DNA of 64,000 nt from Paragordius varius. Taxonomy: Eukaryota > Animalia > Nematomorpha. Shown here piece after piece: positions 20,767 through 58,663 of this stretch. The number at the start of each line of letters is the position of its first letter. Position 1 is the first letter of the stretch. The notes below the pieces were generated by a model. It saw only the letters and a program-made list of their open reading frames with translations. It had not been told where the DNA came from and did no database searches. A program made the translations under genes and the position numbers. The stretch covers positions 7,626,001-7,690,000 of the forward strand of contig OZ176055.1 of assembly GCA_964247055.1 (NCBI GenBank). Direction: 5' to 3'.

Positions 20767-20898
20767 ATTTCTTTCGATTCTGCACGATATTTTATGATAA
20801 AGTTTTTAGGAAATTTCTTCCAATTCTGTGCGATATTTTATGATAAAGTTTATAGAAAAATTCCTTCCGATTCTGTGCGATCTTTTATGATAAAGTTT
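20767..20898. repeat. Tandem minisatellite, about 3 copies of a 46-bp unit
   Basis: Unit att(t/c)ctt(t/c)c(g/a)attctg(c/t)(a/g)cgat(a/c)ttttatgataaagttt repeated head to tail. Confidence 0.85.
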
Positions 20899-22966: not shown

Positions 22967-22997
<31 letters not shown>

Positions 22998-31301: not shown

Positions 31302-31932
31302 TAACAGTGCCTTGTATGACATAATCTTTGGTGTTATACATTAACTATTTTAGTTGTTATCTTGCCTTCATCGGCTAACCAATATTCCATTACAATCTAA
31401 TAAACAATTAAATAGGTTAAAAATTAAACAATTTATATATATTTTCAATAAAATACTTGTGAATACAAATAAATCCGTATCCGATTTTCATTTATATTTA
31501 ATACAAATTTCCTCTTTTCTACTACCTTTTTTATAAAAATTTCTAACATTTCTAATTAATCTGAATTAGGTGTCAGTATACTTTAATTAGTATTTTATAG
31601 TTAAAACACAATAATTTAATAAAAAAATACGGTTGTTCAATATATTTTACATATGTAAACCTTATCAATCATATAGCTAGTAGTAATATTGTCTCATTTT
31701 TATTAGTCTCTATGTCACCTATAAACATTTTTTATCGATATAATATCTACATATTTTATTTTTATGATTGCTTTTTTTCTGAAGGATGTGAGAATCAAAC
31801 CTTTTTGTAGATATAATTTGTTAAACAAATTAAACCGATATTTTTTTAGGACCATTTTTAACACATTATAAATATTAAGTATTTAATTTAACAAATGCAT
31901 GGAGATTAGCATTTTTTAATTTAACTAAGTTA

Positions 31933-32990
31933 TATCGGGTATAGTCATAAGCCCTTACCGTTTTTTTAAAAAACAGGTAATGAATTATTTATTTTATTTA
32001 AAATATTAAAAACCACATTCCATTTTCGTCGTCTTTGAAATCATTAAAATGCTGATCTACGCGTATGTTTCACTATGAAAAAGAATTAGATCAAATTTGA
32101 TCAAGGAAAGTATTAGCAGATGCGGAGAATTTCCCATCAGAGAAGGTGTCTTTCGCCTGTTTCGTTTTGTTTAACGGAGCATTTTCATGTAGGAAAATTG
32201 CTTTTCCATGTCTTTTGTCCTAATATTACGGTCGTTGTTAATTAATTGTTGGCGATATCTCTGTTTATTCGTGATTTTACCGTGTTGTAAAAGTTCATAA
32301 TGCACAATACCGCTCTGATCCCAGAGACACACTGCATTATCTTTTTGACAGGGCCATTGGGCTTTGTGTTGAAGGATCGGCCTACTAGGTGAAAGGTTTT
32401 GGATTTACAAAATAAAATCACCTTCATCACGCGTCACAATATAATATGCAATAATGGTTTTATTCTGTGATGAATCAGGATTTCGTAAGTCACTTTCAGA
32501 TTTTTGAACGTTAATTCAAATTATTTACAGAGCTTATTGGTCTTTCCCATAGCTTGCCGACGTCTAATGTTTGTTTTTTATTACTTGTAATGATTCTGCC
32601 CATTGCCGTTAAGTATGATGAATGATTATCCAATAAATTTTGTACCTTATCGTCTTTGAAGCCATGTGGTTTACCAAAGCGCTCTCCTTCACATTAAAAT
32701 CACAACTTTTGAAATTTTAAAACTTTGTTTCACAGTTTTAATCGATAAGGCATGTTCACAAGTTTATACCAGCAAATGACTTACAACTTTTTTCTACCGA
32801 TCGAATATTTTTAGGCAAAAAACTCGACATGATTACTGAATGATAAAAGTAAGACACATCATTTTGCCGACTCAACTTGTGTTTTTGTAGTTTAGTATTA
32901 TGAACAAAATGGGGTCTGTGTCCAATTGGTATCCGTTCCTTTGACTGATGTAATCTTTTAACATGTAATGGTTTATGACTATACCTTGTA
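31933..32990 (-). mobile_element. Decayed mariner transposon (Mos1/mauritiana-like), internally deleted
   Basis: TIRs TAtcgggtatagtcataagccc / TAcaaggtatagtcataaacca with TA ends. Frameshifted transposase fragments on the minus strand: MSSFLPKN (ATG 32830; Mos1 begins MSSFVPNK), GERFGKPHGFKDD, IVTRDE (first catalytic D, IVTGDE), VCLWDQSGIVHYELL, RYRQQL, LHENA and WEIL. Confidence 0.85.
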
Positions 32991-35140
32991 TATGGGTTGA
33001 TTAACATGAAAATCTCAGTTAATTTAAAATTTGCTTTCTAAAATAATTGTTGTTGAGTTTAGATTAAATTAGCAAAACTTTTTTGTTGGCTATTGACACG
33101 GAAAAATAATTAAATAAAAGAGTTCCATCAAATTTAATTCTTAAGCTCTAAGTATCCTCAGATATGAAGTGTAAAATAAATTTTTATCAAACAATATAAT
33201 CTTATATGGCAGCAAAAAAAGCCATATGATTTTTAGTGCATATAATTTAATAAAGTATCGTTTTGATTTGCAAGGGTGTCAATACTTATATGGAAAATTT
33301 GGACTAATTTAGCCTATAACAAAAAAAATTTTGATGTATAATTATTTTTCATAAATTATATTATTATAGGTATATAAATATATATATATATTATCGAACT
33401 ATATGTAATTCAGCAATGCTTAACCCGCAATGCATTTAAACTATTTCCCTCAATTAATCAGGTGTTTTATAAATATTTTGAAAATTACAATAAAAATCTT
33501 TCAAACAATTAAAAATTTAAATCTTTAAATTATGTAAAAATTGTGTATTGTTCTAATTAATTAATCCATAAAGTTAATTAGTGTTTAGTTAATACAAATA
33601 AAAGTTAATAATTTGAATGCTAAATAAAAATTTGACTTAATTTCTATACACTTTAAAGAAGATAAATATACGGAAATGCACTTAATTAGCTTATAGAATA
33701 ATATAAAAAGGAATCAAATTTATATTCCTACATCATTATCTAGATTACCCCCGCCCCCCTTTCTCACTAAATTTTAATGGGCTCTTCCGTAAAACCCAAA
33801 ATTTACTTGAATTCGATTCGGTAGCTAACAATTTAAAAATAAATACATTTCCTGAATTCTCTTAAGCCAGCTTATTATAAAATTAAAAAATATGGCTTAT
33901 TAAATGGCTAAAAATATTTCTAACAATGTACCGTTTTCGCGAATTCGTTCCGAATAGATATTAATTGGGGGGAATCAAAAAAAGTGACGCTATCGAATGT
34001 GTATGTTAGATTTAAGATTTATGCAGTAAAAGTATTGAAATAATAATTCTTTTTTAAACAGCGAATTTGGAATATAACAACATTATTTCCCGGAATAAAT
34101 AAATAAATATGTAGATATTTATAAAACAAAAATATTTTTATAATAACACAAAGTTGTCAACTTTTTTGTATCGTGTGCTTATGTAACTTTCTAAGGTTTT
34201 CTAACGCAAAATATAATAAAATGTTTGCGGTTGTTTGTTTAATTTATTTTTGCATTAGGGGATGATAACTGTAGAAGCATATTAATATTTTCCAAATAAT
34301 AGCTGTGTATATTAATTAAATTTTTTAAACAAATTTTCTTTCATTATCTATCAGTCTGATAGTATTTGAAATATTTATAAAAGGATGGATATTCATTTTT
34401 TTATATTATTTTTTTTAAAAAAAAGAATAATTTAAACAGTTATTATAAGATATACGTTATACGTTAACAGTCTGCTGCACCAATCAATATAAATAATTAC
34501 TAGGTGTGCTGATTATTTTAAAATATCAATGAAATACCTTTGCAATTTATGTTGCATAAATACAGGAAAATTTATTACAGAGAAAGTTCAACAAAGTTGA
34601 AACTTATATATATATATACATACTTTATTGTTTTAGTTTCAATTATATATGTGCTTAATCATTCCAATATATATATATATATATATAAATATATTAGAAA
34701 TTTAAAAATATATTTTCGTTGAAATTAAACCTATTTCTGATTAGATATAACATATAATTCGCTATTATATAAATGTGGATAAGGCGCTGCTGACAATATT
34801 AAGGACTTAAAGCTTCAAAAAGAGTTGACTTATAGATTATGTTATTAGAATTATATAAAAATACATAAGCATGTATAAAATAAATAAAATAAAATATTAA
34901 CCTTAAACCTTACTCACCATGCTTATGTATTGAAACAAAAGAGGAAAGAAAGTTTCAACAAATCTTTTCTTCTGTAATGCTAAAATTATATGTAACTCTG
35001 ATTCTTATTCTACAGATCATTGTATTCAGGAAAGTGACAAATAGCTGTGATAGATAAAATAGGTATGAATGCATTTATACCTACTTTAAAGTTTAATGAC
35101 TTTACGCAAAAAAATTTGTTTTATATGAATAACTTATTTT

Positions 35141-35143
<3 letters not shown>

Positions 35144-35184
<41 letters not shown>
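35144..35184. repeat. (TA)n microsatellite
   Basis: Uninterrupted TA run. Many shorter TA runs occur throughout the window. Confidence 0.95.
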
Positions 35185-35190
<6 letters not shown>

Positions 35191-36772
35191 TTTTAATACA
35201 TATTTAATAGATATATCTTGGGTTTCTCTTTTCAAACCGTAAAAAAGCCATTTGAAATCGGAAATTATTTAATTGATCTTTTATGATTATTTTTATGCGG
35301 ACTAATTTTTATTGCTAATAATTAATTATTTGTTATTTATTAAAGCTACTAAGATTCAATAAAAAGAGTTAATAAAAATTAGAGTCCGATTTTTTAAACA
35401 TGTGTCGCCAACATTGGCATGTTATATTGAGAATCATTTTACAAAATTTTAGTCATTTTGAAATAAGAGCTTGAATATGTGAGAAAATAATTATATATTA
35501 AATAATCATTATTAAATCAATCCTATTTTTATTGTCTAATACATTTGATAAATATTACAAACTTAAAATAATTAAAAAATGATAACCTACTATGATATAA
35601 CAAGAATCTTATCGCTACATTTCAAGACGCGCTTATTAAATAACCAAATTTTATTCTTTTTAGCACTATATATTAAATAATACTTTTATCTGATAAATTC
35701 TAACGCATCATGCAACAAAGTATGACGAGGCAAAGCCGACGTATAAAAATTGTGTCAAATTATAGATTTGTCGTATATTCTGTTAAATATATATTTTTTA
35801 GAAATTAAACAGATATAGGCTTTTATAATAACAATTTTGTAATGATAACATAACATATATTTATTTTCATGTATTTTTCTTGTAAGTGCATTTCCTTCCA
35901 ACCCGTAACCTATCAAAATTTCAAAAGGGGAGACATTGGAACAGTTTTAACAAATATTATTTAAGAGCGAGGAATAGGATTACATTTCAGCCCTAGAATA
36001 ATATAATCCAAAACGAGTTTATTTGGAAGAAACTGCGGGTTTGGATACCGCAAACTATTAGCCTGATACCCCAGTTTTAAAATTTAAGAAAATCCTAAAT
36101 TGCCTTAATTACAAACCTGGAAAGACTTCCTTATAAAAAAACCATCTTTGTGTCAATTGTTGATTTTATGTTTCGTCAAAGTTTAACTATCTTAGCGATT
36201 GCGCTTCACAGATATTTCCTCATAAAATAATTTGAATTCTGACATGATAAGCAAATAAGTAATGTTACCAACTGAATATAGGATGGTAAGGAGTTTTAAA
36301 ATATTTGAAAATTTTGTTAAAAGAGTTGAATGAAAGATTTAAAATCTCCCAAATTTTGAATATTAATGACCAGTTAAATTTTCCCAAAAAATAACAAGTT
36401 AAATTTATTTTATCTTAATGGTGTTTTAAAAAATCGTAAATTTTTTTAACATTTTTTAGTGCTATTTTGCGTTCTGAAAAAAGCGTGTTGGACATCCCTG
36501 CTTTTTATATAAGCTCTGAAAGCTTCATATTTCATGCCCAATAAAATGGGCTATATTCTGGGAGGATTCCGCGCCAAGAATATGTAATTTATGTTTGATA
36601 TGGCATCATTTTTTCATTAAAAAGAGTATAAATGCTTTTAAAACATAACGTCAGGAGCACTCAAGTATATAGAAATTTTTATATTATATATGCTTAAAAA
36701 AATCACAAATTGCCATAATTTTAGATTTTAAGTAAAAATATGCATTTTAAAATTTATTAGTATTATCTAGAG

Positions 36773-38971: not shown

Positions 38972-39782
38972 ATCTAGAGTAAAAAAAATTCTTATCGCGC
39001 AACATCAGACCTTATTCGTTTATTTCAAGCATTTTAGCCGGATGGTGTCTAAAAATGATATTTTTTGACTCAACATCTAATAATTAAAATAAATTCATTA
39101 TATTATTTAGCCTTTTAATATACTAAATAACATTAATTTGTAAAATATTTTGCTTTTAAGGCTTTAGCTTCTACCATATTTGATTTACTATTACAGTTTA
39201 AATAAAACAATTTGGTTTAAAGCTTGTGCACATATTCAGGGGCAAGTGTGACAAAAAAATCACTACCGGATTAGGTTTAATTTTATGTTTGAAAGTCGAT
39301 TTTAAATGTAAATGCAAATCATTTTTCAAAAGAATGCAAACACATTTTTTTGAGGTATGACTGTTTATAAGGGTTATGATTATAAAATGTGCTCAATCTT
39401 ACAATGATATAAGCATTAATATATTTTTTTGATTGGTGTTAAGGCAGATCTAACCGGTTTTTTTGGCAATGTTCCAAAAACCTGTAAAATCTTTTTAATT
39501 TACCGTTTAATTATTTGAAGGAATCATGTATTACATGATTGCTATAAATAAAATGTAATATTATATCATGCACTAATTTGACAAATATTTACCAACGGAC
39601 ATGGTAATTATATAGTCTTTTATCAAATGTTAATTGGTTAAAATTTTTTAATTGATCAGTCTCATTTACTACTAAACAAACAGTAACACAATATACGTCA
39701 ATATACGACCGGCGTTTATATAATCCATTACAAATAGGGTAGACAGTTATTAAAATTTACAAATTATTTTTTCCCCTTGCTA

Positions 39783-39835
39783 ATGTATTTGGTTATCATC
39801 TTACTTTCAATTCTTTCGGTTAAAGGTAAATCATT

Positions 39836-39879
<44 letters not shown>

Positions 39880-42800
39880 CAGAATTAATAATATTTTTAT
39901 TTAAAGGATCAAAATTAAAACCGTTATCAGCCTTAAATATTCAACTAATTTTAAATTCATTTTAAAAACTAAGGTTATACCATTTACATTTCAAATTCAC
40001 CCTTAAACAATTCAAATTCACCCTCGAACAATTCAAATTCACCCTAAAAATAAATTATGTGTTTTCGAACTAATATAACTCATTATTAATATAAAATAAT
40101 CTTTATGGCATAATTTATTATTTTTTCAGTATTATTTTAATTTAAAATAAAATTTTATTGTTTAAAAATATATTAAAATATAGGTAATTTTTAATCTGAA
40201 AAAACATGTTATTTATTTGAGGGTGAATTTGAATTGTTCAAGGGTGAATTTGAATTGTTCAAGGGTGAATTTGAATTGTTTAAGGATGAATTTGAACTGT
40301 AAATGGTATAGTTAACCAATATTGGGTTATAGGGTATTAATTTGGTTTGAGTCATAATATGGGCGAAATCGGAAATACAGACTGATTTCTATAATAATGA
40401 TGATTTGTTAAAAAATTATCCGCTCTTAACACATTATGCTGATGTAAGGGCCAAAACAATTAGAAAATATATTATTTTGGATATTAAATTAGAAATTTTC
40501 TAAACGTAAAATAAAACATTAGCATAATAATGAATGTAGTTTAAATTTACCTTGAAATAAATATTTTAACAATTCTTTTAGATCAGGGGTGGTCAATCTT
40601 TTTTCCCGCGGGCTACTTTTTTGGGAGATTAAAAGATTCATCAACTTACACAAATATATATACATATATATATATATATCTATTTACGGATTGGGTGACT
40701 AGCACAGGCCATTTTAAAATAAATATTACAGAAAATAATTATTGAATCTTAAATTTCTTAAAATATAGATGATCAAAACGAAATTTATATAAAATGTGCC
40801 CCAAAATGTATTTTTAAATCAATAGTTATTGAAATGTTAGTCAGAAAAAACGGAAAAGATTTAGACCAACTACATAAAAAAAATTTCTTTGGTTAAAACT
40901 TGAAAGACATAAGCCACTATATAAATACGATTTAAATGTGTATAAAATAATAAAATATAAATGAAATAGATAATTTTAAAAATAGAACAATATCGACTAG
41001 TAGTTTCGAATCCTCAAAAGGGGATTTATTTGCAAACTGATTATATGAGTGTATAAAAATAATCTGTATATACAGCTATAAAAATATTTAAAAAAATTTA
41101 AATATCTAATAGAGCATACATTGGTTAAGATGCATTTTAAATTAATAGGTAAAATATTCCACGATGAATTGATGGTATATCCATCGTTCCAGTTAAAATT
41201 TTTGGCCTTATATGTTTTTTGTCCCTAATATTCAATCTTTATAATTATTAATATTAATACAAGTAACATTGTTTAAATCAATTTAATGGTCATAATCCAA
41301 AGCATGCTTTGCTGCACTGCCTTTAACATTGGAATTTATTAAACAAGCCTTGTGTTTGTTAATTCTCGTATTTATTTTTCTATTGGTTTGTCCCACATAA
41401 ACTTAATCACAACTTTCCTAACATTGTGTTTTTCTCTTAGAGAATTCGATCACTTGACATGACTAAAATATGTTAACGTATATATATATATATATATATA
41501 TATAATAGATGGCTTATAATATCCATAAAGCGGGCGGGTGCTTATATAAAACGAAATTGAAATATGAACCAAACATAAAATTTAAAAATTTTATATTTTT
41601 TAGTACAATGTTAACAGGATTTATATTGTTTTCTATTATCAATCATTATTTTATATTTTTTAAATATTTTAAGAAAAAAAGCAGCACAGAATAGTTTTTG
41701 TCTGGATATTTATATACAATTCAGAAAATTAAGATATCTGTGCAAAAATGAAACCGTCGGGACTGTTTGACCAAAAATGATTGGGGACCAGATCATACTT
41801 GGCGGAAAGATTTTTTCAAACCGTAATTTTAGAGCAATAAATGACTGGCTGGAAGCATAAATATATTCCAGTTCTGATCCCTGATCCCTGATACATATTA
41901 TATATATTATATTTAATTTAGGAGCCATTGTTGTGGAAAGGCCACCATTCATATATGATCATTTGACGTATGGATCTTTATACAACAAAACATACGTGCT
42001 GTTAGTTCGTTACCATGATAAAAATGGAACTTCCTTGAGAGATGTAATCGAAAATAAGGCCTATGATAACATACATTTATTAGCTAGGATCTTTCCTTTG
42101 CGCATTGACAAAAATGGTTATTGCATAAAATTATATTAAAACCTATTTTTTTGCACTATTATTTTGAGATTTTGTTATGCTAATATTTTTTTATCACTCA
42201 CACATTTTTAGAAATTCTCTATGACATTAAAGCACGGTGGATTAATTCATCTGTACTAATTCATACCACGAGATTAAAACAGTATCCTAATCTGAAAAGT
42301 AATTATTAATTAATTAACTATAAATATGGACTAAATGGGTATGCAGCCTGAATAATCAGCTTTGATAAGGCATTTTGGTTTTTGCATGATTTTGCTTATA
42401 TGGCTTTGATGCCCATTTTTTTATTGACATTAAAAAATTTAGTTTACTGGGTACAAACAGGGACAAAAATTTGAAAACAAATATATTACATCTATACTTT
42501 ATAAATTGGCAGAAACATATCTGGATGCGAAAAATGTTAGGGCGATATGTCGAAACTATATACTTAAAAGTATGGGAATACACATTATAATCTAGATAAT
42601 ATTAGTGGTTCTGTTATATCATACAAAGTGAAACAAGGGTACCGGAAAAAATATTCATTAGAAATCTTTGACTCAGGTATTTTATCATTTAATATACTAC
42701 ACTAGAATGTTAAGAAAAATATATTTTTATCAATACAAACACCTTTACTTTTTGACAATTTTAGAGCACAAATCAATGAATAAAATTATTGCTGGAATGG

Positions 42801-45800
42801 TAGTTGTGCCCATTAAATCTAATGACTCTACATATGCGGTTGGTATAAAGTCAAAAAATTCCACAAAAACCTATTTTAATGCTCGAATACATTCGCGTAA
42901 AAATTATCGTGTTAAAAGAGGTAATGAATATTTTTGACCTTTTATTACAGCCCCTTAAACTATATATATAAATTAATTTTATAATATTCACCAATATTAA
43001 TATTTTAAACAAATTAGTTATGATATCACGGAATTTTATCACACGGTCCACATAATTCTTGATAAAACATATATTTTCTGATATTAAAATACATTATGAT
43101 TCTCCTTTAGTCGGCCACACGAATCATTTAAGAAAAATAAGATTTTTTTGTGTGATTATTGCGACACATCTAAAAATCGCAAAATTTGCGCACAATATGC
43201 TAAATATATATTTTACGTTAAAAGCTAATGTTTCATTTCAAAATATATCATTAATGATTATTCAAAATAAGATTATGATATAAAATAAAATTCCGGAAAA
43301 GATTTGGTGTCAAGTATCATAAGAGAATTACAATAAAAAAAACAAAAAATAAAAAACAGCCTTTTATTTAAATTGACTATAACCTTTAATGCAAATCCCT
43401 TTAATATTTATATCATATGTTTTATAAATATAACTAAATTTAAATCAAAAAATTTATAAATTTTCCAATATTTAAACTATGGTTTTGCCAAATAAAATCA
43501 TCCAAAAACCCCGGTAGTCAAAAAATATGTTAAATAAAATTTTTATTGTATATGAAATTTAGTATTTGATTTTAAAAAACTCTTAAAACACTATTAGGTG
43601 CAGAGATGTACCGCGTGATATCGAATAAAATTCGGCGTAAAAATTTAAAGTTTAAAATTAATTATCCATTAAAATTGTAAAGGCACCCTAACAAGTTTTG
43701 ATTGGTTTGGAAAATTCAAACAAAAGTATAATACTTATTTAACTATTTTTGAATACCTGGATCTTTTAAATATTAATATGTTAAGATTTGAAACCATCAA
43801 AACAGTTTTTTTTCAAAAATTTATATTTTTTTGAACTTCAACTGTATTGGTATATAATGTTTCTTATATATATACAAACATATGATCAAACATTTAAGCG
43901 TTTTGCATTTAACTATAAAAATTATAGTTAAAATACTAACAGCTGTTTATTTATTTTGTAGTTTTCTGCAGTTATTTCTCTTATATGGCGCTTAACACCA
44001 ATTTGTTTCGGCTTTTGAATTAAAAAATTAAACCTATTAAGGCGTACAAGGGTTAATTTCAGTTTTGAAATACTGACTACATATAATTGATTTTTTTATT
44101 AGCTGGTAGCCTTCCGCCCAACCCTAACAGTAAAATTAATTTGTCAAATGTTACTATTTTATACCATATATAGTGATTGGTAAGTTTTGGGAAAATTCAT
44201 AATTAATATTTTTTGCTAAATATATGTGTACGCACAGGACAAGCAGTTGACAATGTTCTTGAAATTCTAGATGGAGATTTATTGTTTGAGCTACATAATC
44301 CAAGTAATTAAAGTTATTCTAATTATCCTATATATTATTATATGAATCAATCAATATATTAAAATCTTTAAATCTAAAACAAAATTTTACAAAAAATATA
44401 TGTATCTTAAGTGATGAATGATATCGAAGCCATGTTGGCAGAAATGCACGCGGAATTACCTGCAGACATAGGTGAACCCTTGTCCCCATTGATCGATGAA
44501 GTCATTGATGAACCCTTGTTTGATTGGGGTATATATGAAAAAATTCAACACTGAACATTATATTTTATTTTACTAATATTTTAAATTTAAACTGTTTTTT
44601 TTCAAAAAACACGTGAATTATTTTATAAATTTAATAATGCAATATGATTAATATAAAAAATATATTTATATTAGTGCAAGTACTTCAACAGCAAGGTAAA
44701 TTTACTTTATTTTCGTTAATGACTAAAGTTGGTAACCCGTCAAAAAAAACCATTAAAGCTGGTTTCAAAAGTTTTAAAGGGCGTAAAAAATATATTTTTT
44801 GTTCAAGGACTATATACCGATAAAGTTGCATAACTAATATACATAAAATTAAAAATAATCAGAGTCTTAGAAAAGCACTTTGGCCGCATGCGGCCAATGG
44901 GCCGCGGTTTGAGTATCACGGATTAAACAGACCGCTTGTGAATGCGATTCACTTATAATCAATTTGATTGATCCCTGAATAATGAAATATATGTTGTAAT
45001 TTTTAAGTAGTCTGGGAGCTTTAAATTTGTAAAAATAAACTATTAATAAAGATTTTTTTTATAATTTTTACACATTAAACATTTATGTTAGATAAACAAT
45101 TTAATTTGAGAATCTAAAATTTAGAAGGCGCTTTAAATCGAGAGAGAGACACAGCTGATATTATTTATATATCCAAACGCTAATGTAAAAGCATTTATTT
45201 TTGATTTTTTATCATAGAAGGTTTTTGTCACCATCTTTTTAAATTTGGCGGCAAAATATTTGACATGGCTGTTTTATATTTTACTTTTTTATTGAAATAT
45301 TTAAGGCGCCTTAAAGGGAATGGATATTTAATATTTGACCATATTAATTAAGATATTTAATTTAAAATCTCAAGTAGTCATGAAATATGCTAATTAGTAT
45401 TCCACCTTAGAGTTTTAATATAGAATTTACAATATTTAATTTTTATATAGAAGTCATAGATGAACCTGGACCTAATGGTAGAATATTATATTAAAAATTT
45501 TAGTGGAAATGGAAGAAAATTTGGAGGCTGATGGTAATTTTCATTAATTATAGAAAGGTTCTGAATCTGTTTCCGAACAAGAGCTGTCCTCCGGTAAATT
45601 ATCTGATTATACATTAAAACTTTTAATTATAATAAAATAATTAAATACTGTATTGGCTTTACGAATTTTAGTCTATTCCATTTTTATGTGTACTTTTTGA
45701 TTGACATAAAAGGAATCAGTTTATTTTTATATATCACTTCTGATAATAGATTTGGACGAAATGACAGATGTCGCTAGTGATGAAGAAAACTCAATCGATT

Positions 45801-48800
45801 CTCCTGAACAATCTGGTAAGTAAAAAATTTTATTATCAACTTTAACCCGTAAATTACGATTCATTTTTTTCAAAACGCTAAATATTCTATTTATCTATAT
45901 TATTGCTTTTTACATTGTTGAACCTCAATGGGGGTGTTGATTTTGATTTATCCAAATTTAAGGATCAAATACACCTTTTCCCCACTGCTTTTAGGAGAAA
46001 GAAAATAGCCATTACAAAAAATTAATATTTAATTTTTCATAATCTCATAAATGCAACATCTTTAACATCAATATCATTGACAATTTAAACAAATCCAGTT
46101 ATGAAAATCGTATTATTTTTTGTATAAAATTATTAAATAAAATAGTTTTGTTGAAAAAGATGACAAACCATTTAAAATAACACTTAAATAGGTATAAAAA
46201 ACAGATATTACTATAAAAATGTATTACGGAAATCTTGATCATAATTTTAAATGGATTTAGTCTCATGTGGGGTATACTTGCGTAGCATTTTAATTTTTCG
46301 GATATCGATTAGGCAATTTTGAACCAAAACAAATATTTAGAGTCCATTTATTTTAACCTGGATAGATACTGATGAAATGACGAATGAAGCAAGTGATGAT
46401 GACACAAACTCATTAGATTCAAATGAATCAGGTTTTTAAAATTACCCAAACAATTGTGTAGCAAAAATATTATTTAAAAGTTTTATTGCTACTAAACTAA
46501 TATCATTGATTAATTTATAGATAATAAGAACAGAAAAAGACCGCATTCGGATACATCATCTGACAACGAGAGGAAAGAAAAAAGAGGTTTTAATATCTCG
46601 TATTTTACACATTCTTTTAGTCAAACTTTCAGAGGAAGATTCACCTGAAAATGAAGGTATTTTAAAATATTTATTATCGAACAACACATACGCTTAAAGA
46701 TGTTTAACATTGAAATAAATTTCTTATATAATTATAAAGTCATATATATAAATCGATAATTTAGATGAAATGACAGATGAAGCGAGTGAAGATGGGGGTG
46801 AGTCTGATAAAGATGAATCAGGTGAGATAAAACTAAAATCATTTATTGATTTCGTTTAATATAAAAATTTTAAATATCGGTAGACAAATGAATACGCATA
46901 GCTATAACCTAGTGGTTTCTCTAAACTTTGCAATTAGTAATTTAAATAAGCAAGGCATTTCTAGAAAATAAGATTTATTGAACTTAAGCTGTATAATAAA
47001 AAAACACAGAGTTAACTATGAAGTTTAAAAATTAGTAACATAAAACTATTTTTTTATAGATTTGGATAAATTAACAGATGAAGCTAGTGATGATAACGAA
47101 GATGAACCTAAAGATTCAGGTTTGAATGCTAATGTTATATTATGAGTGTCATTACATAAAATCTCGAATATCTATTAAAATGATATTATTATTATTATTA
47201 TAAAATTATATTTTTTATTAATGAATATGGTTTTAATAAAATTAATTAAAACGTATAATTTGCATTTTGTTCCAATTAATTTCTTATATATGATTATGAT
47301 AAACATAATATGAAGCAGTAATAATATCTTTAGCGTGTTCGACAAAAACAATTTAAAAAATTTAATTTCGAGCATTAGAAATCGATTTAGCTGACTGTAA
47401 TATTAAAAATATAAGTAAAAATATCATCTATTAGATCATAACGAACCGAGCAATGAAAATGAAGAGGCATACCCCGACATGGATCAATCGCCATCCGATT
47501 CTGATGGTGATGAGAACAAAAGTTTTCCTATTGATTGATTTCATTTTAATTGTTTAGTTAAAGTATCAGATAAACAGCCAAAAGAAGATGTACCCAAGGA
47601 AGAAGGTAAATTATAATAAATTTTGATATCAATTAAAAAATTATTCTATGGTAAGAATAATATGAATGTTTTCCTAACATGCAGATAAAACACAGAAATC
47701 AGCCCCTGATAGTGATGGTATTTATCGATGACTAATTTTAAGACACCGATAATGAAGATTCGGAAACACAGCCTGTCAGTGAGGATGATATTGCAGGTAT
47801 ATTACCATTTAAGTTCCCAATTATGTGATAGCCAAACAAATAAATTTTATTCAATAGTGAACATATTTTATGGATATTTTCATTATACATATATTGCAAG
47901 AGTCTAATATTGGCAAACTTTTTCTGGTTGAAAATAAAATGATTCAAAAGCGTATAACTCAGAAGAAAAAGATTTGTCTTTGATAATTTTATAAAAACAG
48001 TAAATTAAATTTTTTCTCGATCATACTCAAAAGAAATAAAACTTTTTTTATAATTATTCATATACCACTGTGTGCAAAAAAGAAAGTTAATTTTTTTTAA
48101 CAATTTTTTTTATGAGATAGCTTATGACCAGCGAATACATTTGCCACAAAATTTTTAATTGTTGACAACCTGTTTTTGATATAAAGAGAGAAAATTAAAA
48201 TGGGCAAAAAGTGATAAACAAGGATAATTAAAAAAATAATGATAGAACTTGAGATATGGTTAATTACCATTTTAGCAGATATTGACATTATAAATAGCCT
48301 AAAATATAGTTAGGGTTAAATTCAGCTGACAAACATTTATTTATGAAATTATATTAAAATATTTTTTTTAATTGTTTACTAACTCAACTCACTATTAAAA
48401 TCTTAATTTTCTATATACAAAATAAAACTAAAAAATTTTGTTTTTAATTTTTTTGATTTTTGTCATCTGGTTTATGGGTGTATAAAAAATTTACCGTTTT
48501 ATTTTGGAGTCTTACAAGAGCGAGTATTATAAAGTATATAAATTAATGCAAATTTAAAAGTAGTGGAATAACCAACAATCCGCATAAATCCCTATAACAG
48601 GGTTGTTAATTTTTACTGGGATTTGTGCGTTCGGTTATTCCACTACTTGTAAATATTTTGATTAATTTATTTATATAATTTTCGCTCATGTATGACTCCA
48701 AAATAACAGTAAATTTTTTATACACTCATAAACAGATGACAAAAATTGAAAAATAAAAAACAATATTTTTTCAATTTTATGTTGGTATACAAGTTTTTTT

Positions 48801-51800
48801 ACTGAATAAAACATGAATATTAAGATTTTAATAGTGAGTTTAGCTAGTAAATAATTAAAAAAATTATTTTAATATAGTTTGATAAAAAAAATTTGTTTTT
48901 TAAGTATGATAATAGAAAAACGCGATTTTTTATCTGAATTTAACTATATGATTTTAGGCTATTTATAAATTCTAAATATCTGCTAATATAATAAACCATA
49001 TCTCAAGTTCTATCATTATTTTTTAGTTATCCTTAGTTTTCACTTTTTGCCCAATTTTGATTTTCTCTCATTTTACCGGAAACCGGTAAAAACTTATGAA
49101 TACGCCTTGGTATATCTTGCAATGACAATAAATTAGCTATTAGATTAACACTTAAAAAGTGGATTATCACATCTTTTTCTTGTTTTTTGTGAAACCCATG
49201 TCCAGTGTGTTGGTGTTCAACTTGACCGAAACCGTTACCTGCTTTAAAAGGGGTTTTGAATAAATATTTAATTCAAAAGCAGATTGTAGTTAAATTAATG
49301 TAAAACTTTATGGCCCGCATATCTAAATTTTCTTTCATAGATATGGACAAAATGACAGATGAAGTGAGTGAAGAAGAAACTGCCCCGGCCGAATCTCAGG
49401 AACCAGGTTAAAAATTTGTTCTGACAATTATCATTATATTTAAAAATATAATTTGATGTTAATTCTATAGCAATTATCGGTGTGGCTATATTTTTTAGTA
49501 TATTATTGTTTAACCAAAATTTGTAGAAAAATTTGAAAGTTTAAAAATTATGAACAATTTTTTCAATGAATACATCAATTTTATATCGGTAGGTAAGGGT
49601 TTTCGATTTTATAACAATTATTACACTAATTGGTTTTTTATTTAATAGATGATGCTAGCAACAACAATGAAAATACCGATAATAGAGACTCAGATGAAAA
49701 TCTATCCAATAATGAAGGACCAGATAAAAAAGGTTTTTATAATCTAGATATTGAATAAATCTATCAATAATACAGTGGACCGGTTTTATAACCCTAATTG
49801 TCCAATGTATATAATAAAAATAAATTAAATTTAGCAGTAGATATAAATAACGCCTCTATTTGACTAAAAATTAGGGAATAAAATGATGTAATAGTTTGAT
49901 GTCAAACTTTTTTCTTAATGCTAAAATTATTTATATATTACAGTTTATTAAAGATATTTTTTATACGATTGAAGCATTAAATTAAATTAAGACCGTGCTT
50001 TTTTATAGTTGTATAACAATATCAATTAAGTTCGCCTAGGGTAACCAATTACCCGATTCCGATTGAACTGTGATAAACTAAACTTTTTAAATGACTTTAA
50101 TACAGTAATACATTTTAGGAGTATATCAAAATATTTTTAAATTATAACAAACTAAGGAGGTACATAAATGCTAGAAATACATTCTTATTTCATTCCACCA
50201 GAATTAATTAATTTAATAATTAGCATACATTAATCAAAATAATTTTCTTTGAAAATTTTTTATTTTTATAGAAAAAAATGGCAGAACAATAAAATTCCCG
50301 AAAAACGACGTTAAAAGTTAGTTTAAATCTAATATCTCTACAGACAAACCCAACAGTCAACCTAAAGGTAATTTTTATTTACATTCATAAGAATAAATCA
50401 TGCTAATATTTTTGCATAGAATCTTTTATCATAGTGGTTATTGTTTTGGAGTTTAGAAGTTATTTAAAAAATATTCCACTTTTGTGCTTACTCCATATCG
50501 AAAAAGCGTAAAAAGAGCATATGCTATACTTTTACAAAAGCTAAAAGCTTCATTCTAAAGGCATATCTTTAAAATATTTAAAAAACTCTATTGAAAACCT
50601 AGCCCATTTTTATATTACATATTTTTAGACGTAGGCTCCGAAAGTTTTAAATTTTTAGGCCCCTCTTAAATGAACTTTTTCTAATTAACAAAAAATGCAG
50701 AGATTGAGCAACAACTATTGTAATTATGATATAAAAAGAAGTTATTTATGAAACGATGCATTTGCATGAAGATTTATTTTTGAGCAAAATTTACGCATAA
50801 ATAGAATTTTAACGTAGGGAAACGGTACAAACAGTATATGATCTCAACAATCACCCTTTTTATACAATCAATGATGCTAAATATTTCTATGCCTCAGAAT
50901 TTGAATAAATGTTGTTTGATTTCAAATTAGCTAATTTTTTATGAACACTTAAATTTGAAAGCGAAAGTATATTTTAATAAATTTTGAGGTTGTAGAAATC
51001 TTTAGCAGTCAATTATGGAAAAAGAGGCTTTTTTATTGTCTTAAAATGCACCATGCTATATCACAACAAAATTAAATTAAATTTATAAATAAAGTATGCA
51101 TATTCCAAAAATAACTATTTTTAATGTCATATGCTAGCTTATTTTTCAATTATTGCGAATCTCTGCATCGGAAAACCGATTGAAGGGGGTCGAAAAATTT
51201 AGTCGCATTTAAAAATTAAATTTTTAGTTTATTTTTTAAGTTTATTTTAACAATCACAATGATCACTTGTTGTGTTCTAACACAAGTTTTTTAATTCAAT
51301 TATTGCTGTTGATTCAATTATTAAAAAAAATTGTAATATATATTTGCTTAGCAGATGGTATTTTATATAATTAAATATTTAGCTTTATTAAAAAAGAGCA
51401 TATACTAATTTTGCCATTGTTCAATATGGAGCAACTACCACAAAAGCGGAAATAACTTTCTTAAATCTCTTCGTAAATCCTAAATCTACCTTTCTACTGG
51501 AAAATTATTTATTAGTATTTTCGAATGGAAATAAGCCGCCTTTTTAATAATAATTTTTCGCATATACTTACAAATATTGTTAAAAAAATTTAAACCTTAC
51601 AAATTTAATTACAAAATTTATCAGAAAAAAACTTCAAGACTTAGAAATCTATCTTCAGTTGTCATATTAAACAATAACTTTATGACTTAATTAAAAATAG
51701 GTTCTCGCAATCATAAACCAAATATAAGTATTTTAATTTGCTAATAATTTTCTCTAAAATATTTGATTTTTATAATATTTTACACATTCTTGTAAAAAAC

Positions 51801-54800
51801 AGTACCATCATCCCCAAAGTCTGGAGTATCAGGAGGAGCAGCATTTGGCGCCTTAGCTGGTATGAACTAAAACTAATGGTTCTTTTTATAATAAATTAAC
51901 CCATAAAGTTCTCTATAATAAACAATTATTTTTTGTAACATGTAGGTAAACTTACTGCATTAGGTATATTTTACAATGCTTTAGATTTTCTAGAAATATA
52001 TTTAACTATATACATGAATAACGCTATATAATCGTTAATTTTTAGCGGCGAAAGGTAAAAATCTTAACATTGAACTTTATTTATATTTCCGTCATTATTA
52101 AATTATATATGTCTTACTAAATGATTTTAGGTTTATTCACGACTGGAAGTATGATTTTATTGTATTATCAAATTGTAATTTATAGGTGTCCTATTCACTA
52201 TAATTGTCGGTACGTATTTTGATCAATTTGTTTCAATGTCATTTCTCGTATTCTTAATATTTACTAATCGATTATATTATTGTAGGAGGGATTGGAATTA
52301 TTATGTTAGCGGTGGGAGCAGCCATTTCCAGTAATATAAATTATTTTTAAATTCTTACTTGAGAATACCCATTACTTAATACTTAAATATATATGTATAT
52401 ACAGCAAATGACCATAACTCCAAAATTCTCAGCGTTGAAAGTTAGTATTATAATTTTTAATTTTTATATATTTATTAATATTACAAAACTATGCATTACC
52501 CATATATATTTCGTTTAGCAAATCGCGAAGAAAATGGTATATATTAATTGTAAAAATTTATAGTTAAAACTCTTCTCGTTGAGGTTCCTATCCAAAAACA
52601 AGATGGTACAATGAAAGGTAATATATACAACTTATAATAATTAAACTTATATGGAGAAACATAAAAACATAAGGACAAATATTGTTTAAAAGACCTCTGT
52701 ACTTTTCTAAACTTATTTTTTTTAATATAACTCATTGTTTTAAATAGCGTAGTATGAATTAGAGATTACATTTTAATACCGCTCTTCTATAATATTAATT
52801 AGACAAGACTCCACAAAGCCCTCATGTGTATATATCAGAAAATAATGTTAAAACAACTTTGTTATCACAAACGGATGATTGTCTTTTGTTCAAAATTGAG
52901 ATTTCGTTGGCTGGTAATTTAATAGGACATTGATCAATGTCTTATAAATTACTTTTTATATCATATAATTGTGGTATAGAAATGCGGAAAGGTAATTGTT
53001 ATGACAAAAAAAATTCTCTCTATGGAATCCAAAACTACTTTTTGCGTCTTGAAGAGTCAGGAGGATCCAAAAACTTAGTAATTGATTATGCAATGTCGGA
53101 ATCGACTAAGAGTACCACAGCTCTTTTGGATATACATGGACCTTATAACTTTAATCAAAAACAATCTGTAACGGTATGTAGTCTCAATTTTTTATCAATT
53201 TTTATGTATCGTCTCTAAATAACGATTCGCGAACTAAGGGTGACTGAGGGATTTGAAAAATTCTTTGAGTCCTTAAAAAATGTTTGAATTACCAAAACGT
53301 TGAAAACATAATGAACTTTTTAAAAAACTAACGGATAAACTCATTAGCATGTTTGCAATATATTAGGGTTGGTATGAATTATTTTTGAAATATCGTGACT
53401 ATTTTTCAGGATTTTTTAAAACAAAAAATTGAATACAACCGCAAATGAACCAATTTCTGATTTAAAAAGAAGAATATATTAATATGACCATATTTATGCT
53501 TTTATTTGAATAATTAAAACTCCTTGTTGTGTGTGTTATCTTTGGAGAAAAGTAATGTTTTCTGTTTTTATCAGGCTAAATTAAAGTGTTAAATTTTTTT
53601 TACCAAGAATTTTGATAATTTTAACAGATGATAAGAGCGTGAAAGCTAAATAATTTGGCAAATATTATAAACAATATTAATTTTAATTTTTGTAAGAATT
53701 ATAAAATTTTTCAAACTATAAATAAAATTTTATTAGAATCTTTGCAATATATTTTTAATAAAATAAGTTATCATAAATTGAAAACCTAATTATCTGTTTA
53801 ATATTGTGTTAGTCTCAAAATCCAAAATCATTTGTTGTTAATAACTTACGGCCCGGAAAATATACCATGCTTCTGCAAACAACCATAAACGGACAGCAAG
53901 ATTTAGCTCGTCAAATTGATACGAATTTTACATGTAATTAATTAAACAACTAAATGAATTATCCTAAAAAACAAATTTTAACTTTTTTGGATGATTGTCA
54001 TTTATAAAAAATCTATAACTTAATTATATATAATTACAAAATAATGTATCGCTTTTTTTATACAACACACTGAAAATTATTTGCCCTAAAATGATGATGT
54101 GATGGATATCCCTTAATTTGGATACAAACTTTGGGGAAGTTGAGACAGCTTGGACCATAGCATTCTGTTGTAAGATATTTATGCAAGCTCATGATTGAAT
54201 GTGCTCTAATTTTTTTAATCTGATCTAAGTATCGTAGTTTAGGTGGCCTTCCACACTTCCTAGCCCTTTCAGGGCCTAATATACTCCCTTTTTCTAAGTT
54301 ATCAACTCTTACACATGTTCAAAAAATCTGAGTTGCAAGGTATGAATTATTGTAGAGTTTGTTTGGGGTAAATATGTCTAGTATTTTATCTTTTGTTCCC
54401 ATTGTCTACCGAGCATATATATAGGTTCATAATTCAAATGCTGATGGTCCAGGATTCAGAGATATATTGCATTACTGGAAAATTATTGATTCTATTACAC
54501 GATTTTTGAAGGAATCGGGAAATTTTTATTTTTTAAGAATGGATTTGAGTTGAATTTTTTGCAATTGCACCTCTCCTGGTAGCCATTTATAGAAATAAAT
54601 GTTCTGAGGTAAGTTATGTTGTTCTAAGCAAATAATTCACCCCCCCCCCCCAAGTTATAGTAATAAATTGGCTCTATTTGTATGTATAGCGTTTTCTTGG
54701 GGTTAATTTCAGCCCCACTTAATTCTTTCGTGTTCTATTGTTTTTTAAAGTTCGGAGTAAGTCCTCTCGGTAAAAATTGTTGTGTCGTGTCTCGCCTCCT

Positions 54801-57599
54801 ATTTGGATGTCTGCTGAGTCATCTCCGATTATTAAAATGGTTTATGAATATCGAATAATAAACCCGATTTTTAAAAGAATTATAGAATATACATACAAAA
54901 GCCAAAATACTTTTTGCCCAAATTGTAGCAAATTATGTGAATCAATTCGGTTTAAAAATATTTGGTTCTATTGGATTAATTTTTAGCCTACAATAATTTT
55001 ATTTTCTGGACCATGTGATTTGCATTCGACTAGAAAAAAATATATAGGGATATAATAAATATTAAATAAAAGGTCTTAAACTTAAAATTTAAGGAAAAAT
55101 TTTAACGATCTTGTAAGATACATACTAAACAATAATTTAATATAGACTCGTGGAGATCTTCATGGATGGATATGTTATTACAATCGAGTCGGTTTTTTTT
55201 CAATGTTGAGATAAAACTTTTCCATAAAGTGTGTGGCAAAAATTTGTTTTTTTATATATTGTCCATCCACCTATTTGAACTACGCCTACGTTTATTGCTG
55301 ATTTTTCTCAACATCAAAGAGTAATTAGCTAGATTTCATAATGTGGCCAAAGTAAAATAGTTGGGTGCGGATCGATATGCTAAGAGGGTATATTAGGATC
55401 GATTTTATTTAGGATATGTTTGTCAAGCTTGTGAAGTTTCAAAATCGTTAGCATATAAAACACACAAGCGTTCATAGTAGTTCAGAGTCCGCCATTTATG
55501 AAGAATTAGTTGAGTAGGCTAGCCACATATTTTTGTTTTATGAACTGTTATTTGATGTCCAGATTTCGAAAATAATTATGAGCCTTTTGACCATAGCATC
55601 GAGTGTGTATTTATTATCGATCCTATTATGCTCCTTCCGATACATGTATAAATAATTATTATTTCATAAAGGTTAATGGCTATTAAATCATTAGAAACTT
55701 TCGGGCAATTTGCAATATTTTTGTGAGATACTCTTCCTACCATCAATATATTGAATTTTTGTGATAATGACTTTCGATTGTCTGCGAACTGTATCATCTT
55801 TGTAATAGAGGTTAGAATTGTAGTTAGAAAATCCAAAATTAAAATTTATGGCTGTAAATTCTAGAAAAAATAAATATGCGCTTTTAAACATTCCTGTTTA
55901 ATTATTAGTATTCATTTTTTATAGTTTCAGTTATTTTAATATATTAGTTTTAAATATTAATGGGCATCGAATCCCTTATTCTGCAGATATAATAATATCG
56001 TTTGAGCAATATAGCCTAACCTATTTAAGTCCTTCTTTTGAATAGGTTAGGCTATATTTTTTTAATTCTAATTTTTGAGGGCACAAAATCACAAAAAAAA
56101 TTTTTATTGAGATCTGTGCTACACTACAATTATTATTAAATGTCAGTATTAAAGAAGCCTAAAAAATTGTTGGCTCTTGTTATAAATGTATTTATATGCG
56201 TCTTAACTTGATTTTATGGAACTTATTTTTTAACATTTAGACGATGGCGAAACCCTGAAAGGTATAATAGCGTGTAACATGTTAACTATTAATGACAAAA
56301 AATATTTATTATATTAAAAATATTTCTTTTGGGTAAAAAAATATAATTTGCAAAAATATAAATTTTTACAAAGAAAACCGTTACCTATTAAAATCTAAAA
56401 TAGGGTTATTCAGATAATAAAAGATGTACCTTTTAAAGCCAGTCATTTTTATAATATTTTGCTTTAAAATTGCAAAAAGTACTCATAGATAAAAAGTAAT
56501 ATGATTTTCTTTTATAATTGGCTTTGTATTTTGGAAAAATGTTTAATATTATATGAGGTAATAATAAATATTTTACTTATTTTTGACCAACATATTGAAA
56601 AGTTTAGTAAATTTTAGTATCAAAGTTTACGTTTGAATGTTAACCCCATTTTTTGGATCCGAAAACTAGAGTGTTTGCTTATGAAAGCCCCACATTTAAA
56701 AAATTGCATTTTGACCCCAGTCCCTGATAAATATGCCTGATAAATATGCTATAATAATATCAATACATAAGAACAGTTAAAACTTTTTTTATATTCGATT
56801 TGGATTAACTCTGTAATAAATGTTTCAGAAGATAACGACCTTCTTAAAGGTGATTACGCATGTTTAAACAAAACGTCCATTCAAATTTGCACCAACTACT
56901 TGAATATTTATCCCGACAAATCTTACAAAATCTCTCTGCATGATGTAGATGAAATGAGTTTTGTATATGGCACAAATGTTAAGAATATTGTAAGTCAAAA
57001 GTTTATTAAATATAAATGTATCATAATGATGAAAAAAATATTATAAAACTTAGAAAAATTATTTTACCCACAAAATACCAGTAGAAAAATTATGAACGTT
57101 AAAATTTATTAAATTTAAATATCAAAGGAAAAACTATTATGACATTTATATATTTTTTGGTTTGAAATTTATACGGTAATTAAGTTAAATTACAGTATAT
57201 ATAAAATTTATACAAACGAAACATAGGAATATACTCATATATTTTTTTATAAAAGACAACCATACTTTTACAAACTTTAATTATCCTATTAAAAACAATT
57301 ATTAATCATATATATAATTATTTGTGTTACCAATATACATTTCTATTTTTTTTCTTTGGAGTAAAAATTCAGATTAAAAAAGTATAGTTATATTTTATAA
57401 AAAAATATTTGTCTTTATATTACGTTTTGTCTGTATAATTTTAATTATTACTGTATATTGATGTATATTTTAGAGATCCAAATGTATTGAAATAAATATG
57501 GATATGTCCAAGTTGAAAAGTGGCAAAGAATATCTTATTGCGTATAAGCCTTTACATGCATGCTACGAACAGATTGGAAAATTAATAATATTACTCTAA
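39783..57599 (+). CDS. Micro-exon-built secreted protein: signal peptide, prodomain ending RVKR, acidic repeat region, Gly/Ala hydrophobic segment, C-terminal beta-rich/FN3-like domain
   Basis: Exon 39783-39825 (MYLVIILLSILSVKG), then 41922-42116, 42765-42920 (ends RVKR), 44238-44303, 44412-44528 and 44675-44695. About 25 further phase-1 exons of 9-111 nt follow to ~52914, then 52980-53173, 53813-53933, ~56832-56990 and ~57474-57599 (TAA 57597-57599). All joins use GT-AG and keep one open frame. No family recognised. Confidence 0.8.
39976..40310. mobile_element. MITE with 21-bp subterminal repeats, copy 2, in intron 1 of gene 4
   Basis: TIR TATACCATTTACA...TGTAAATGGTATA. Unit caaattcaccct(t/c)(a/g)aacaatt occurs x3 on the left and its reverse complement x3-4 on the right. 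Confidence 0.85.
40584..40625. mobile_element. Solo Charlie-type hAT terminus
   Basis: CAGGGGTGGTCAATCTTTTTTCCCGCGGGCTAC preceded by ttttagat (TA at positions 4-5, as in Buster targets). Partner end not found. Confidence 0.4.
44755..44921. mobile_element. Short deletion derivative (MITE) of the 36773-38971 hAT family
   Basis: Right end ggccgcggtttgagtatcacgg is nearly identical to the right end of the large element. The left end resembles its left terminus (gggc...aaaatatattttt...ttcaagg). Flanks attaaag / attaaac. Confidence 0.6.
48186..49069. repeat. Foldback / long inverted repeat: ~410-450-bp arms around a 25-bp spacer, intronic in gene 4
   Basis: Arm 1 (48186-48592) is the reverse complement of arm 2 (48618-49069). 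Examples: aataatgatagaacttgagatatggtt vs aaccatatctcaagttctatcattatt; gtagtggaataacc vs ggttattccactac; gggcaaaaagtga vs tcactttttgccc. Confidence 0.92.
54085..54560 (-). mobile_element. 3' remnant of an RTE-clade non-LTR retrotransposon
   Basis: Minus-strand fragments ISESWTI, LRFFEHV and RKCGRPPKLRYLDQIKK (cf. RTE C-terminal RGRP..RW.D), with a short (CAT)n tail at ~54090. Confidence 0.65.
55280..55900 (-). mobile_element. Decayed LINE reverse-transcriptase remnant (CR1/L2-like)
   Basis: Minus-strand fragments MIQFADN (cf. YADD), IYTCIGRSII...MLWS (cf. LYKSLVRSILEY...WSP) and LNYYERLCVL (cf. LSYEERL). Many stops. Confidence 0.5.
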
Positions 57600-58663
57600 T
57601 AATCGTTACTCTTTTAATCTAATCACAGTCAATAAATAATTGGTCATATTGTATTTAAATTTAAAAAAAAATAATAGAATCTTATTAAATGCCATGCGTG
57701 TGCACCGAAATCGCAAATTTGGATATATGTACACAATGCACAGAAAAAATTTATTGACGAAATATATATTTTCTGATAGAAAAATACACCAGTCTCATGG
57801 TGCTTTTGGTTTTGGGCTTTGCAAGTCATTAAAGAAATATATATCCATTTTTGTGGTAATTGCTTATAAAAATTACAAAAATCGCGCACATAATTATAAA
57901 TAATTTTTTTTGATGAAAATTAAATGCAATCAAAAAATATAAAATATAATATTTATAAAATTTTAATATTTAGATGTGGGCTCCGAAAGACTTATATTTT
58001 TTCCTACTCTAAAATGAAATTCCCTCAAAAAAACGCAAAAATGCCAAGATTTGGCGATAATTTTTTTAGGATACTATGAATAAAAAAAATATTTTGAAAA
58101 AATGTTACTTTCTAAAAAAATAATTTTTAATTTTTATAAACCTTTTTTTATGGTATTTTGGATGGTCAAAACAATAGGAATATAGAAACACTTTATATAT
58201 ATAATGGGATACACTTAAATGACACCTCAGATTTTTTAAAATATTTCGACCATTTGAGTTTACAAAAGATGTTTTTATAATACTTAAATTATTTAAAGAT
58301 GCAGAATTATAGTCGAAATTCTGATAGCGTCATCCAATTATATATAAATTGTGATTTCTGTCTTAAAATGTCTTTATACAGTTTTCACCATGCTAAAATG
58401 TTTTAACGAAAAATTCAATATCGGAAACTTATTTTACGCTTTAAACCATTAGTAAAATTAAATTTTAGGGAAAAGAATAAAATAATACTGTTTTTAAATA
58501 AAAAAGTTGAGATTAAAAATTTTAGGTCAAATAAAGAAATTATGTTGAAAAATGATAGGATATGTGTATGATACATAGTTTGAATGATAAAAGTTATAGG
58601 GAAAAATGTTGAAGGACCAACTTTAAATGTTGAAAGACCAATTTGAACAGGTTAAAAACACTG

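Follow-up and report, generated by a model that had tools for sequence, protein, structure and literature searches.

Within the 64,000-nucleotide (nt) window analysed here, a stretch of contig OZ176055.1 from the horsehair worm Paragordius varius, a chain of 34 GT-AG exons runs along the + strand from 39783 to 57599 (window coordinates) and splices into a single 2037-nt coding sequence of 678 residues. The chain was rebuilt independently of an earlier, sequence-only reading of the same DNA, by reading 39.6–58 kb and splicing by script, and the sole stop in its frame is the terminal codon at 57597–57599. With moderate confidence, we read the locus as one intact protein-coding gene of 34, perhaps 35, exons that encodes a single-pass membrane protein of ~680 residues. 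The sequence-only reading had proposed a real multi-exon gene, composed almost entirely of symmetric phase-1 exons and overlooked by open reading frame (ORF) finders, and guanine-plus-cytosine (GC) content, codon periodicity, stop distribution, and exon paralogy all bear this out. Its description of the product as a secreted protein does not hold, as a strong transmembrane segment (mean hydropathy 2.56) and a 262-residue, non-acidic, Cys-containing domain point to a 678-residue membrane protein instead.

Exons 2–29 (28 consecutive exons) and exon 32 each have a length divisible by three, begin and end in phase 1 (1-1), and measure 9–117 nt. The sequence-only reading had counted roughly 30 phase-1-1 cassettes, and all exon sizes listed at that time were recovered (9, 18 in three exons, 21, 24, 27, 30, 36, 45, 54, 57, 60, and 66 nt, the last in five exons); exons 30, 31, 33, and 34 (194, 121, 161, and 126 nt) are asymmetric. 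Exons 30 and 31 together (194 + 121 = 315 nt) form a symmetric pair interrupted by a phase-0 intron, and exons 33 and 34 complete the reading frame. Across the chain, 31 of the 33 introns are in phase 1 and two are in phase 0. Exon ends resemble proto-splice sites, with G as the last base in 26 of 32 and a split codon that is mostly GAT (Asp). Exons of ≤36 nt (14 of 34) carry 17.5% of the coding sequence and those of ≤81 nt (27 of 34) carry 55%, with the acidic exons mostly spanning 48–117 nt around a median of ~60 nt. An ORF listing at ≥40 residues picks up just a few of the 34 exons.

Three introns internal to the gene measure 26, 24, and 25 nt (45478–45503, 45534–45557, and 47718–47742), each with a TTAAT/CTAAT branch-like motif positioned ~8–12 nt before the AG. 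Each also contains in-frame stops, and these introns must therefore be spliced out. A possible additional 1-1 exon of 54 nt (52564–52617; GC 0.35, TTTATAG acceptor, GTAATA donor), which lies outside the 678-residue model, would add a 27-nt intron at 52537–52563. Second in-frame donors at 44471 in exon 4 (60 vs 117 nt) and at 47521 in exon 14 (72 vs 87 nt) preserve phase 1 and are candidate alternative 5′ splice sites.

The length of the chain is not itself evidence for a gene, because shuffled DNA yields comparable phase-1-1 chains. Block-shuffled copies contain, on average, 2.7 kb of open phase-1-1 "exons" without overlaps per 9 kb, the real region contains 2.98 kb, and the reverse strand and control regions give totals similar to those of the studied region. 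Coding is instead supported by base composition, by codon periodicity, and by the openness of just one frame. GC is 0.376 in exons and 0.242 in introns; G occupies 45%, 8%, and 14% of codon positions 1, 2, and 3 in exons 2–20; and the exons of ≥45 nt, comprising 528 codons, are free of stops when read in the model frame but contain 27 and 82 in the two alternative frames and 11–39 on the reverse strand. Among the top 70 candidates by coding score, none is left unused by the model. We consider it extremely unlikely that the 34-exon chain is a dead gene or arose by chance when AT-rich DNA was spliced by hand. Chains of like raw length do come from shuffled sequence, but the periodicity, the frame-specific absence of stops over 528 codons, the GC islands, and a set of conserved paralogous exons with a third-position bias all oppose chance, and the absence of any frameshift or internal stop across 34 exons opposes a dead gene.

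The paralogous set comprises exons 8 (45750–45815, 66 nt), 9 (46366–46431, 66 nt), 12 (46765–46821, 57 nt), 13 (47060–47119, 60 nt), and 18 (49341–49406, 66 nt), which represent acidic repeat copies 1–5. Each exon encodes one acidic module of 19–22 residues, D-[LT]-D-[EK]-[ML]-T-D-E-A-S-D-D..., with copy 1 reading DLDEMTDVASDEE.... The 33-nt cores of the five exons are 72% identical, whereas the 40-nt flanks on each side reach 33–35%, in line with the 32% expected at random. Per site, the copies differ by 0.22, 0.18, and 0.44 at the first, second, and third codon positions. Conserved cores, random flanks, and the third-position excess together indicate old exon duplications under protein-level constraint. 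In copy 3 (46755–46770), the ancestral acceptor ATAG now reads ATAA and a new AG has appeared exactly 6 nt downstream (TTGG to TTAG), revealing a splice site that shifted with the frame kept. The symmetric run as a whole probably originated largely by tandem duplication of one phase-1-1 exon, and would have been retained because any in-frame unit can duplicate harmlessly.

The predicted protein would comprise four parts: a signal peptide, a polyanionic disordered region, a Gly/Ala stretch leading into a transmembrane helix, and a C-terminal domain. Exon 1 (39783–39825, 43 nt) consists of an ATG plus MYLVIILLSILSVK, a stretch resembling a signal peptide, and ends in phase 1 at a GTAAAT donor; no other ATG..GT candidate within the 17 kb upstream is as hydrophobic as this segment. 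Its junction with exon 2 generates a cleavage-like site between VKA and G (VKA/GS). Residues 1–15 are a probable signal peptide, and joining the 39783 exon to the rest of the chain across a 4.3-kb intron is plausible. A TATATAA motif at 39717–39723, read from the sequence 60 nt before the proposed start, adds weak support, as such motifs are frequent in DNA this AT-rich.

Exons 2–20 encode a 344-residue region with 18% Asp, 17% Glu, 12% Ser, a net charge of −94, and no Cys. Within it lie 22 S/T-x-x-D/E sites, a pair of N-x-S/T sites, and a single basic cluster, RKRPHSDTSSDNERKEK, and its composition suggests that it is intrinsically disordered. Exon 2 (44103–44129, 27 nt), encoding AGSLPPNPN, stands out with a GC of 0.59 vs 0.25 in the intron, and is followed in the spliced model by exon 3 (44238–44303, 66 nt), which is acidic and amphipathic. 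Exon 4 (44412–44528, 117 nt) has the top coding score and carries an EVIDEP motif that also occurs in exon 5 (45451–45477, 27 nt). The 26-nt intron directly follows exon 5, and exon 6 (45504–45533, 30 nt) is held between this intron and the 24-nt one, both stop-containing; exon 7 (45558–45593, 36 nt) continues the spliced model. Between repeat copies 2 and 3 lie exon 10 (46521–46586, 66 nt), with the basic cluster extended as RKRPHSDTSSDNERKEK(R) and compatible with a bipartite nuclear localization signal (NLS) pattern or with dibasic processing sites, and exon 11 (46621–46656, 36 nt), preceded by a 34-nt intron. Exon 14 (47435–47506, 72 nt), supported by coding score and the spliced model, and exon 15 (47558–47605, 48 nt), supported by the spliced model, lead to exon 16 (47685–47717, 33 nt), the 25-nt intron with its CTAAT branch-like motif, and exon 17 (47743–47796, 54 nt). 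Beyond repeat copy 5, the region closes with an Asn/Asp/Glu-rich exon 19 (49649–49732, 84 nt) and with exon 20 (50344–50367, 24 nt); exons 17 and 19 are placed by coding score and the spliced model, and exon 20 by the spliced model.

The acidic region passes into a Lys-punctuated, Gly/Ala-rich juxtamembrane stretch and then into a hydrophobic helix at residues 394–416, with a Kyte-Doolittle mean of 2.56 over 19 residues. When 19-residue windows are ranked by hydrophobicity, none of the top five falls in any other internal segment. Exons 21–26 (57, 18, 9, 18, 24, and 45 nt), which are separated by regular introns of 37–86 nt and are the best of just nine candidates in that interval, encode the Gly/Ala stretch together with the helix. 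The Gly/Ala-rich segment begins in exon 21 (51803–51859; GC 0.53) and continues through exon 22 (51946–51963), which has the best GC and splice signals among the nine, the candidate exon 23 (52046–52054; CGGCGAAAG between TTTTAG and GTAAAA, GC 0.67), and exon 24 (52131–52148), identified by coding score and candidate scan. Exon 25 (52186–52209), from the candidate scan, contributes the first part of the helix, and exon 26 (52286–52330) contributes its core. Exons 27 (52405–52440, 36 nt) and 28 (52519–52536, 18 nt), both from the candidate scan, follow.

The last 262 residues are neutral and show a strand-like alternation, with six Cys arranged in three near pairs; residues 1–460 contain no Cys. 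This orphan C-terminal domain is probably β-rich. It begins in exon 29 (52803–52913, 111 nt) and extends through exon 30 (52980–53173, phase 1 to 0), exon 31 (53813–53933, phase 0 to 1), exon 32 (56241–56261, 21 nt, 1-1), exon 33 (56829–56989, phase 1 to 0), and exon 34 (57474–57599, ending in the stop TAA), the last five placed by the spliced model. An AATAAA motif lies at 57631–57636 on the same strand, 32 nt past the stop codon.

Taken together, this organization would be compatible with a membrane-anchored polyanionic brush, probably phosphorylated, whose luminal or outward-facing side captures basic ligands or cations, calcium among them. On the opposite side of the membrane, the C-terminal domain could then serve in anchoring or signalling.

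The sequence-only reading had recognized no homologue, and Pfam, PDB, Atlas, protein-library, and metagenome searches likewise identified none. Pfam scans of all C-terminal exons returned just a sub-threshold match of exon 31 to Y_Y_Y, an Ig-like family (E 0.0077); exon 30 matched nothing in Pfam, PDB, or Atlas, and the ORF around it matched nothing in a word search of 5.8 billion proteins. PDB sequence searches gave no match, and a metagenome contig scan found no relative. Atlas matches were weak and of β-sandwich or lipocalin-like kinds, and the Atlas feature neighbours of exon 34 are C-terminal β-sandwich domains (score 0.90, 114 shared features), a lead only. A HMMER search of exon 30 against 1.84 billion representatives returned one match, P0001, a 2881-residue bacterial adhesin-like repeat protein, at E 1e-18. 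This E-value is an artefact of summing over nine near-identical repeats, each of which scores just ~9 bits when compared with the spliced C-terminal region. The alignment runs colinearly through the exon 29/30/31 junctions, pairs two Cys, and scores ~35 bits; homology was rejected, as ~35 bits is not significant library-wide and no other member of this large bacterial family matched. P0001, Y_Y_Y, and the exon 34 neighbours are at most hints of an Ig-like β-sandwich. The gene's own protein is absent from the 1.84-billion library, indicating that the gene is apparently unannotated.

Several known architectures were also considered. SUN-domain, TMEM106, LAP1/LULL1, CCDC47, and EMC7 layouts were rejected, having no Pfam support and, for several, the wrong domain order. 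The calumin/CCDC47-type layout, which we take to combine a signal peptide, an acidic luminal calcium-binding region, one transmembrane helix, and a larger cytosolic domain, follows an order like the one seen here and serves as a lead only, membership being unsupported by C-terminal exons without any Pfam match.

Whether these parts belong to one gene depends on exons that lack a start of their own. Exons 2, 3, and 29 contain no in-frame ATG and have a stop just upstream (7 nt upstream for exon 29); each therefore needs an upstream phase-1 exon, which places the acidic, transmembrane, and C-terminal portions in one gene. A division into two products, with a first gene ending at or near the hydrophobic segment and a second starting at the ATG at 52937, appears very unlikely. 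Read-through of the exon 26 donor would add SNINYF and reach a stop six codons past the exon, leaving a hydrophobic tail such as a glycosylphosphatidylinositol (GPI)-anchor signal, and the ATG at 52937 shares the reading frame of exon 30. Such a division, however, leaves exon 29, 111 nt long, open, and with good splice sites, in need of its phase-1 upstream exon; moreover, translation from 52937 yields no convincing signal peptide, 52330–52800 holds no AATAAA while one sits just after the final stop, and phase is continuous across exons 27–30. The 39783 match may have arisen by chance and the real first exon may lie elsewhere, in which case the same gene would lack a signal peptide and adopt a type II topology, with its acidic N-terminal region cytosolic or nuclear and its Cys-containing C-terminal domain luminal or extracellular. 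We regard this form as unlikely, though to be taken seriously. Signal-peptide-like ATG..GT segments often arise by chance, the acidic region combines a bipartite-NLS-like cluster with many CK2-type sites and no Cys, the C-terminal domain has its six paired Cys and two N-x-S/T sites, and Lys residues lie N-terminal of the helix. Against it, the coding-looking exons 2 and 3 need an upstream phase-1 ATG exon, the 39783 segment exceeds all other candidates in hydrophobicity and carries a GTAAAT donor, its junction with exon 2 creates a good VKA/G cleavage motif, and the difference in flanking charge is small, with two positive residues on each side of the helix. A signal peptide followed by the acidic region on the luminal or outer face is the orientation retained in the model of a single-pass membrane protein.

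The sequence-only reading also termed the locus a micro-exon gene (MEG) and envisaged protein diversification by combinatorial splicing. The architecture fits that term, although only loosely, given the 17.5% of coding sequence in the 14 exons of ≤36 nt. Diversification of this kind, in which symmetric cassettes are skipped combinatorially to give a pool of acidic variants, secreted or displayed on the surface, where parasite meets host, is in our judgement distinctly improbable. All 29 symmetric exons could be skipped without a frameshift, exons 4 and 14 have in-frame alternative donors, and human symmetric exons encoding disorder tend toward alternative splicing (PMC3632108). The coding share of the small exons nonetheless differs from that in MEGs, where they make up most of the coding region (PMC4350168, PMC10526429), and the five repeat exons bear the marks of age and constraint rather than of fast diversification. 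In addition, the micro-exon layout runs through the Gly/Ala and transmembrane exons 21–26, where skipping would be destructive to the helix, which argues against a dedicated diversification device. Equally doubtful is the broader proposal that the locus is one of a large, undescribed class of horsehair-worm phase-1 micro-exon genes, independent of flatworm MEGs and aphid bicycle genes, in which cassettes and very short introns would yield many acidic surface or secreted isoforms, perhaps used against the insect host. For the single membrane-protein gene that we favour, we infer mostly constitutive splicing.

Some observations weigh against this gene model and its proposed topology and function. 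The smallest exons (9, 18, 18, and 21 nt) were placed solely from their splice consensus, a local peak in GC, and how well they suit their surroundings, and each of the 9–24-nt exons and 24–26-nt introns is, taken singly, a candidate. At the 5′ end, signal-peptide-like ATG sites occur nine times on the + strand by chance and about as often on the control strand, the proposed first intron is long at 4.3 kb, and the signal-peptide fit of MYLVIILLSILSVKA followed by G was judged by eye, with similar segments being frequent by chance. The helix is not followed by a Lys/Arg cluster, an uncommon arrangement among type I proteins, and the proposed function is drawn from composition alone.

The surrounding window is AT-rich, with a GC of 22–40% in 2-kb bins, consistent with the value of 26.9% published for Gordionus montsenyensis (10.1101/2023.06.26.546503). 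Neighbouring genes are orphans, with no Pfam domains except ShK and EGF. A large EGF-like-module gene occupies 4532–12073 (+), with repeated CxNGGT..C.CP.GF.G..CE modules joined by Pro-rich linkers; its exons are unusually long and GC-richer (up to 40%), contrasting with the micro-exon build of the gene described here. On the minus strand, an ShK-domain exon at 27132–27233 (Pfam PF01549, E 8e-5) is apparently part of a gene with large exons, including ORFs at 26171–26653 and 22966–24717 (160 and 583 residues) that have no Pfam match. A mariner-type transposase remnant at 32177–32359 (−; PF01359 Transposase_1, E 2.4e-10) lies in intergenic DNA upstream of the gene. GC-filtered phase-1-1 chains reach 1755 nt at 27000–35950 (−) and 1530 nt at 12500–21450 (+), with 1716 nt for the studied gene, and further small-exon genes may be present in these two intervals.

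Repeat elements also occur within the introns. A foldback element of ~920 nt (48168–49087), consisting of nested inverted repeats with arms of ≤99 nt that are 76–89% complementary, takes up a large part of intron 17, which is 1.5 kb long. Another foldback, containing 21-nt tandem repeats, lies in intron 1 (39961–40310). Rfam, tRNA, and tandem-repeat scans of 38–59 kb identified no RNA genes, and only TA microsatellites and short intron repeats.

If transcripts confirm the model, standard annotation of such AT-rich genomes would be missing whole genes, as 27 of the gene's 34 exons do not exceed 81 nt and its introns include three or four of just 24–27 nt. Confirmation would also extend micro-exon-type architecture beyond flatworms and hemipterans, here even through a transmembrane helix, and would provide a defined locus for testing cassette-splicing variation in a non-flatworm parasite. 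Its extension through the helix would argue that such an architecture can arise through exon duplication and dense phase-1 introns with no role in diversification.

Among known systems, schistosome MEGs have a coding region composed mostly of very small exons (PMC4350168), 6–81 bp and commonly ~15 bp long, with 10–20 exons that encode small secreted proteins (PMC10526429). Like the gene described here, whose own signal-peptide exon is putative, they follow a signal-peptide exon with a long run of symmetric, multiple-of-three exons separated by much longer introns, they are overlooked by standard gene finders, and they encode orphan products in a parasitic worm. The two differ in how the coding sequence is distributed, as the typical exon here measures 48–84 nt, and in the product, which here is a 678-residue protein with a transmembrane helix and a 262-residue folded-looking domain rather than a small secreted one. 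The symmetric exons of MEGs are shared, whereas a coding sequence of mostly tiny exons and a small secreted product are not. There is no sequence relation between MEGs and this gene; MEGs are reported as flatworm-restricted, and the literature searched makes no mention of micro-exon genes in Nematomorpha. Aphid bicycle and megacycle genes, which are recognized by structure and not by sequence (PMC9168663), likewise carry numerous small internal exons that all share one phase, together with orphan sequences and an N-terminus of secreted type, which is putative in the present gene. Their exons are in phase 2 and encode paired CYC motifs, in contrast to the phase-1 exons, Cys-free acidic region, and transmembrane anchor found here.

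Calpastatin, MAP2, and SCPP-type genes resemble the locus in that each symmetric exon carries a single functional module of disordered sequence, in their growth through tandem duplication of exons, in their CK2-type or acidic Ser-x-Glu sites, and in 1-0/0-1 exon pairs, like exons 30 and 31 here, whose combined length is symmetric (PMC3632108). SCPP genes differ in using phase 0, calpastatin and MAP2 differ in being cytosolic, and none of these genes shows sequence similarity to this one or combines a transmembrane helix with a C-terminal domain in this way. Symmetric 1-1 exons, tandem exon duplication, and disordered regions are linked, with calpastatin and MAP2 as examples (PMC3632108), and the locus contains both a same-phase run of symmetric exons encoding low-complexity sequence and paralogous neighbouring exons. 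Our best reading is that the gene would represent this known relation at an unusual extreme, marked by small exons, introns of 24–26 nt, and a transmembrane helix split into four or five pieces.

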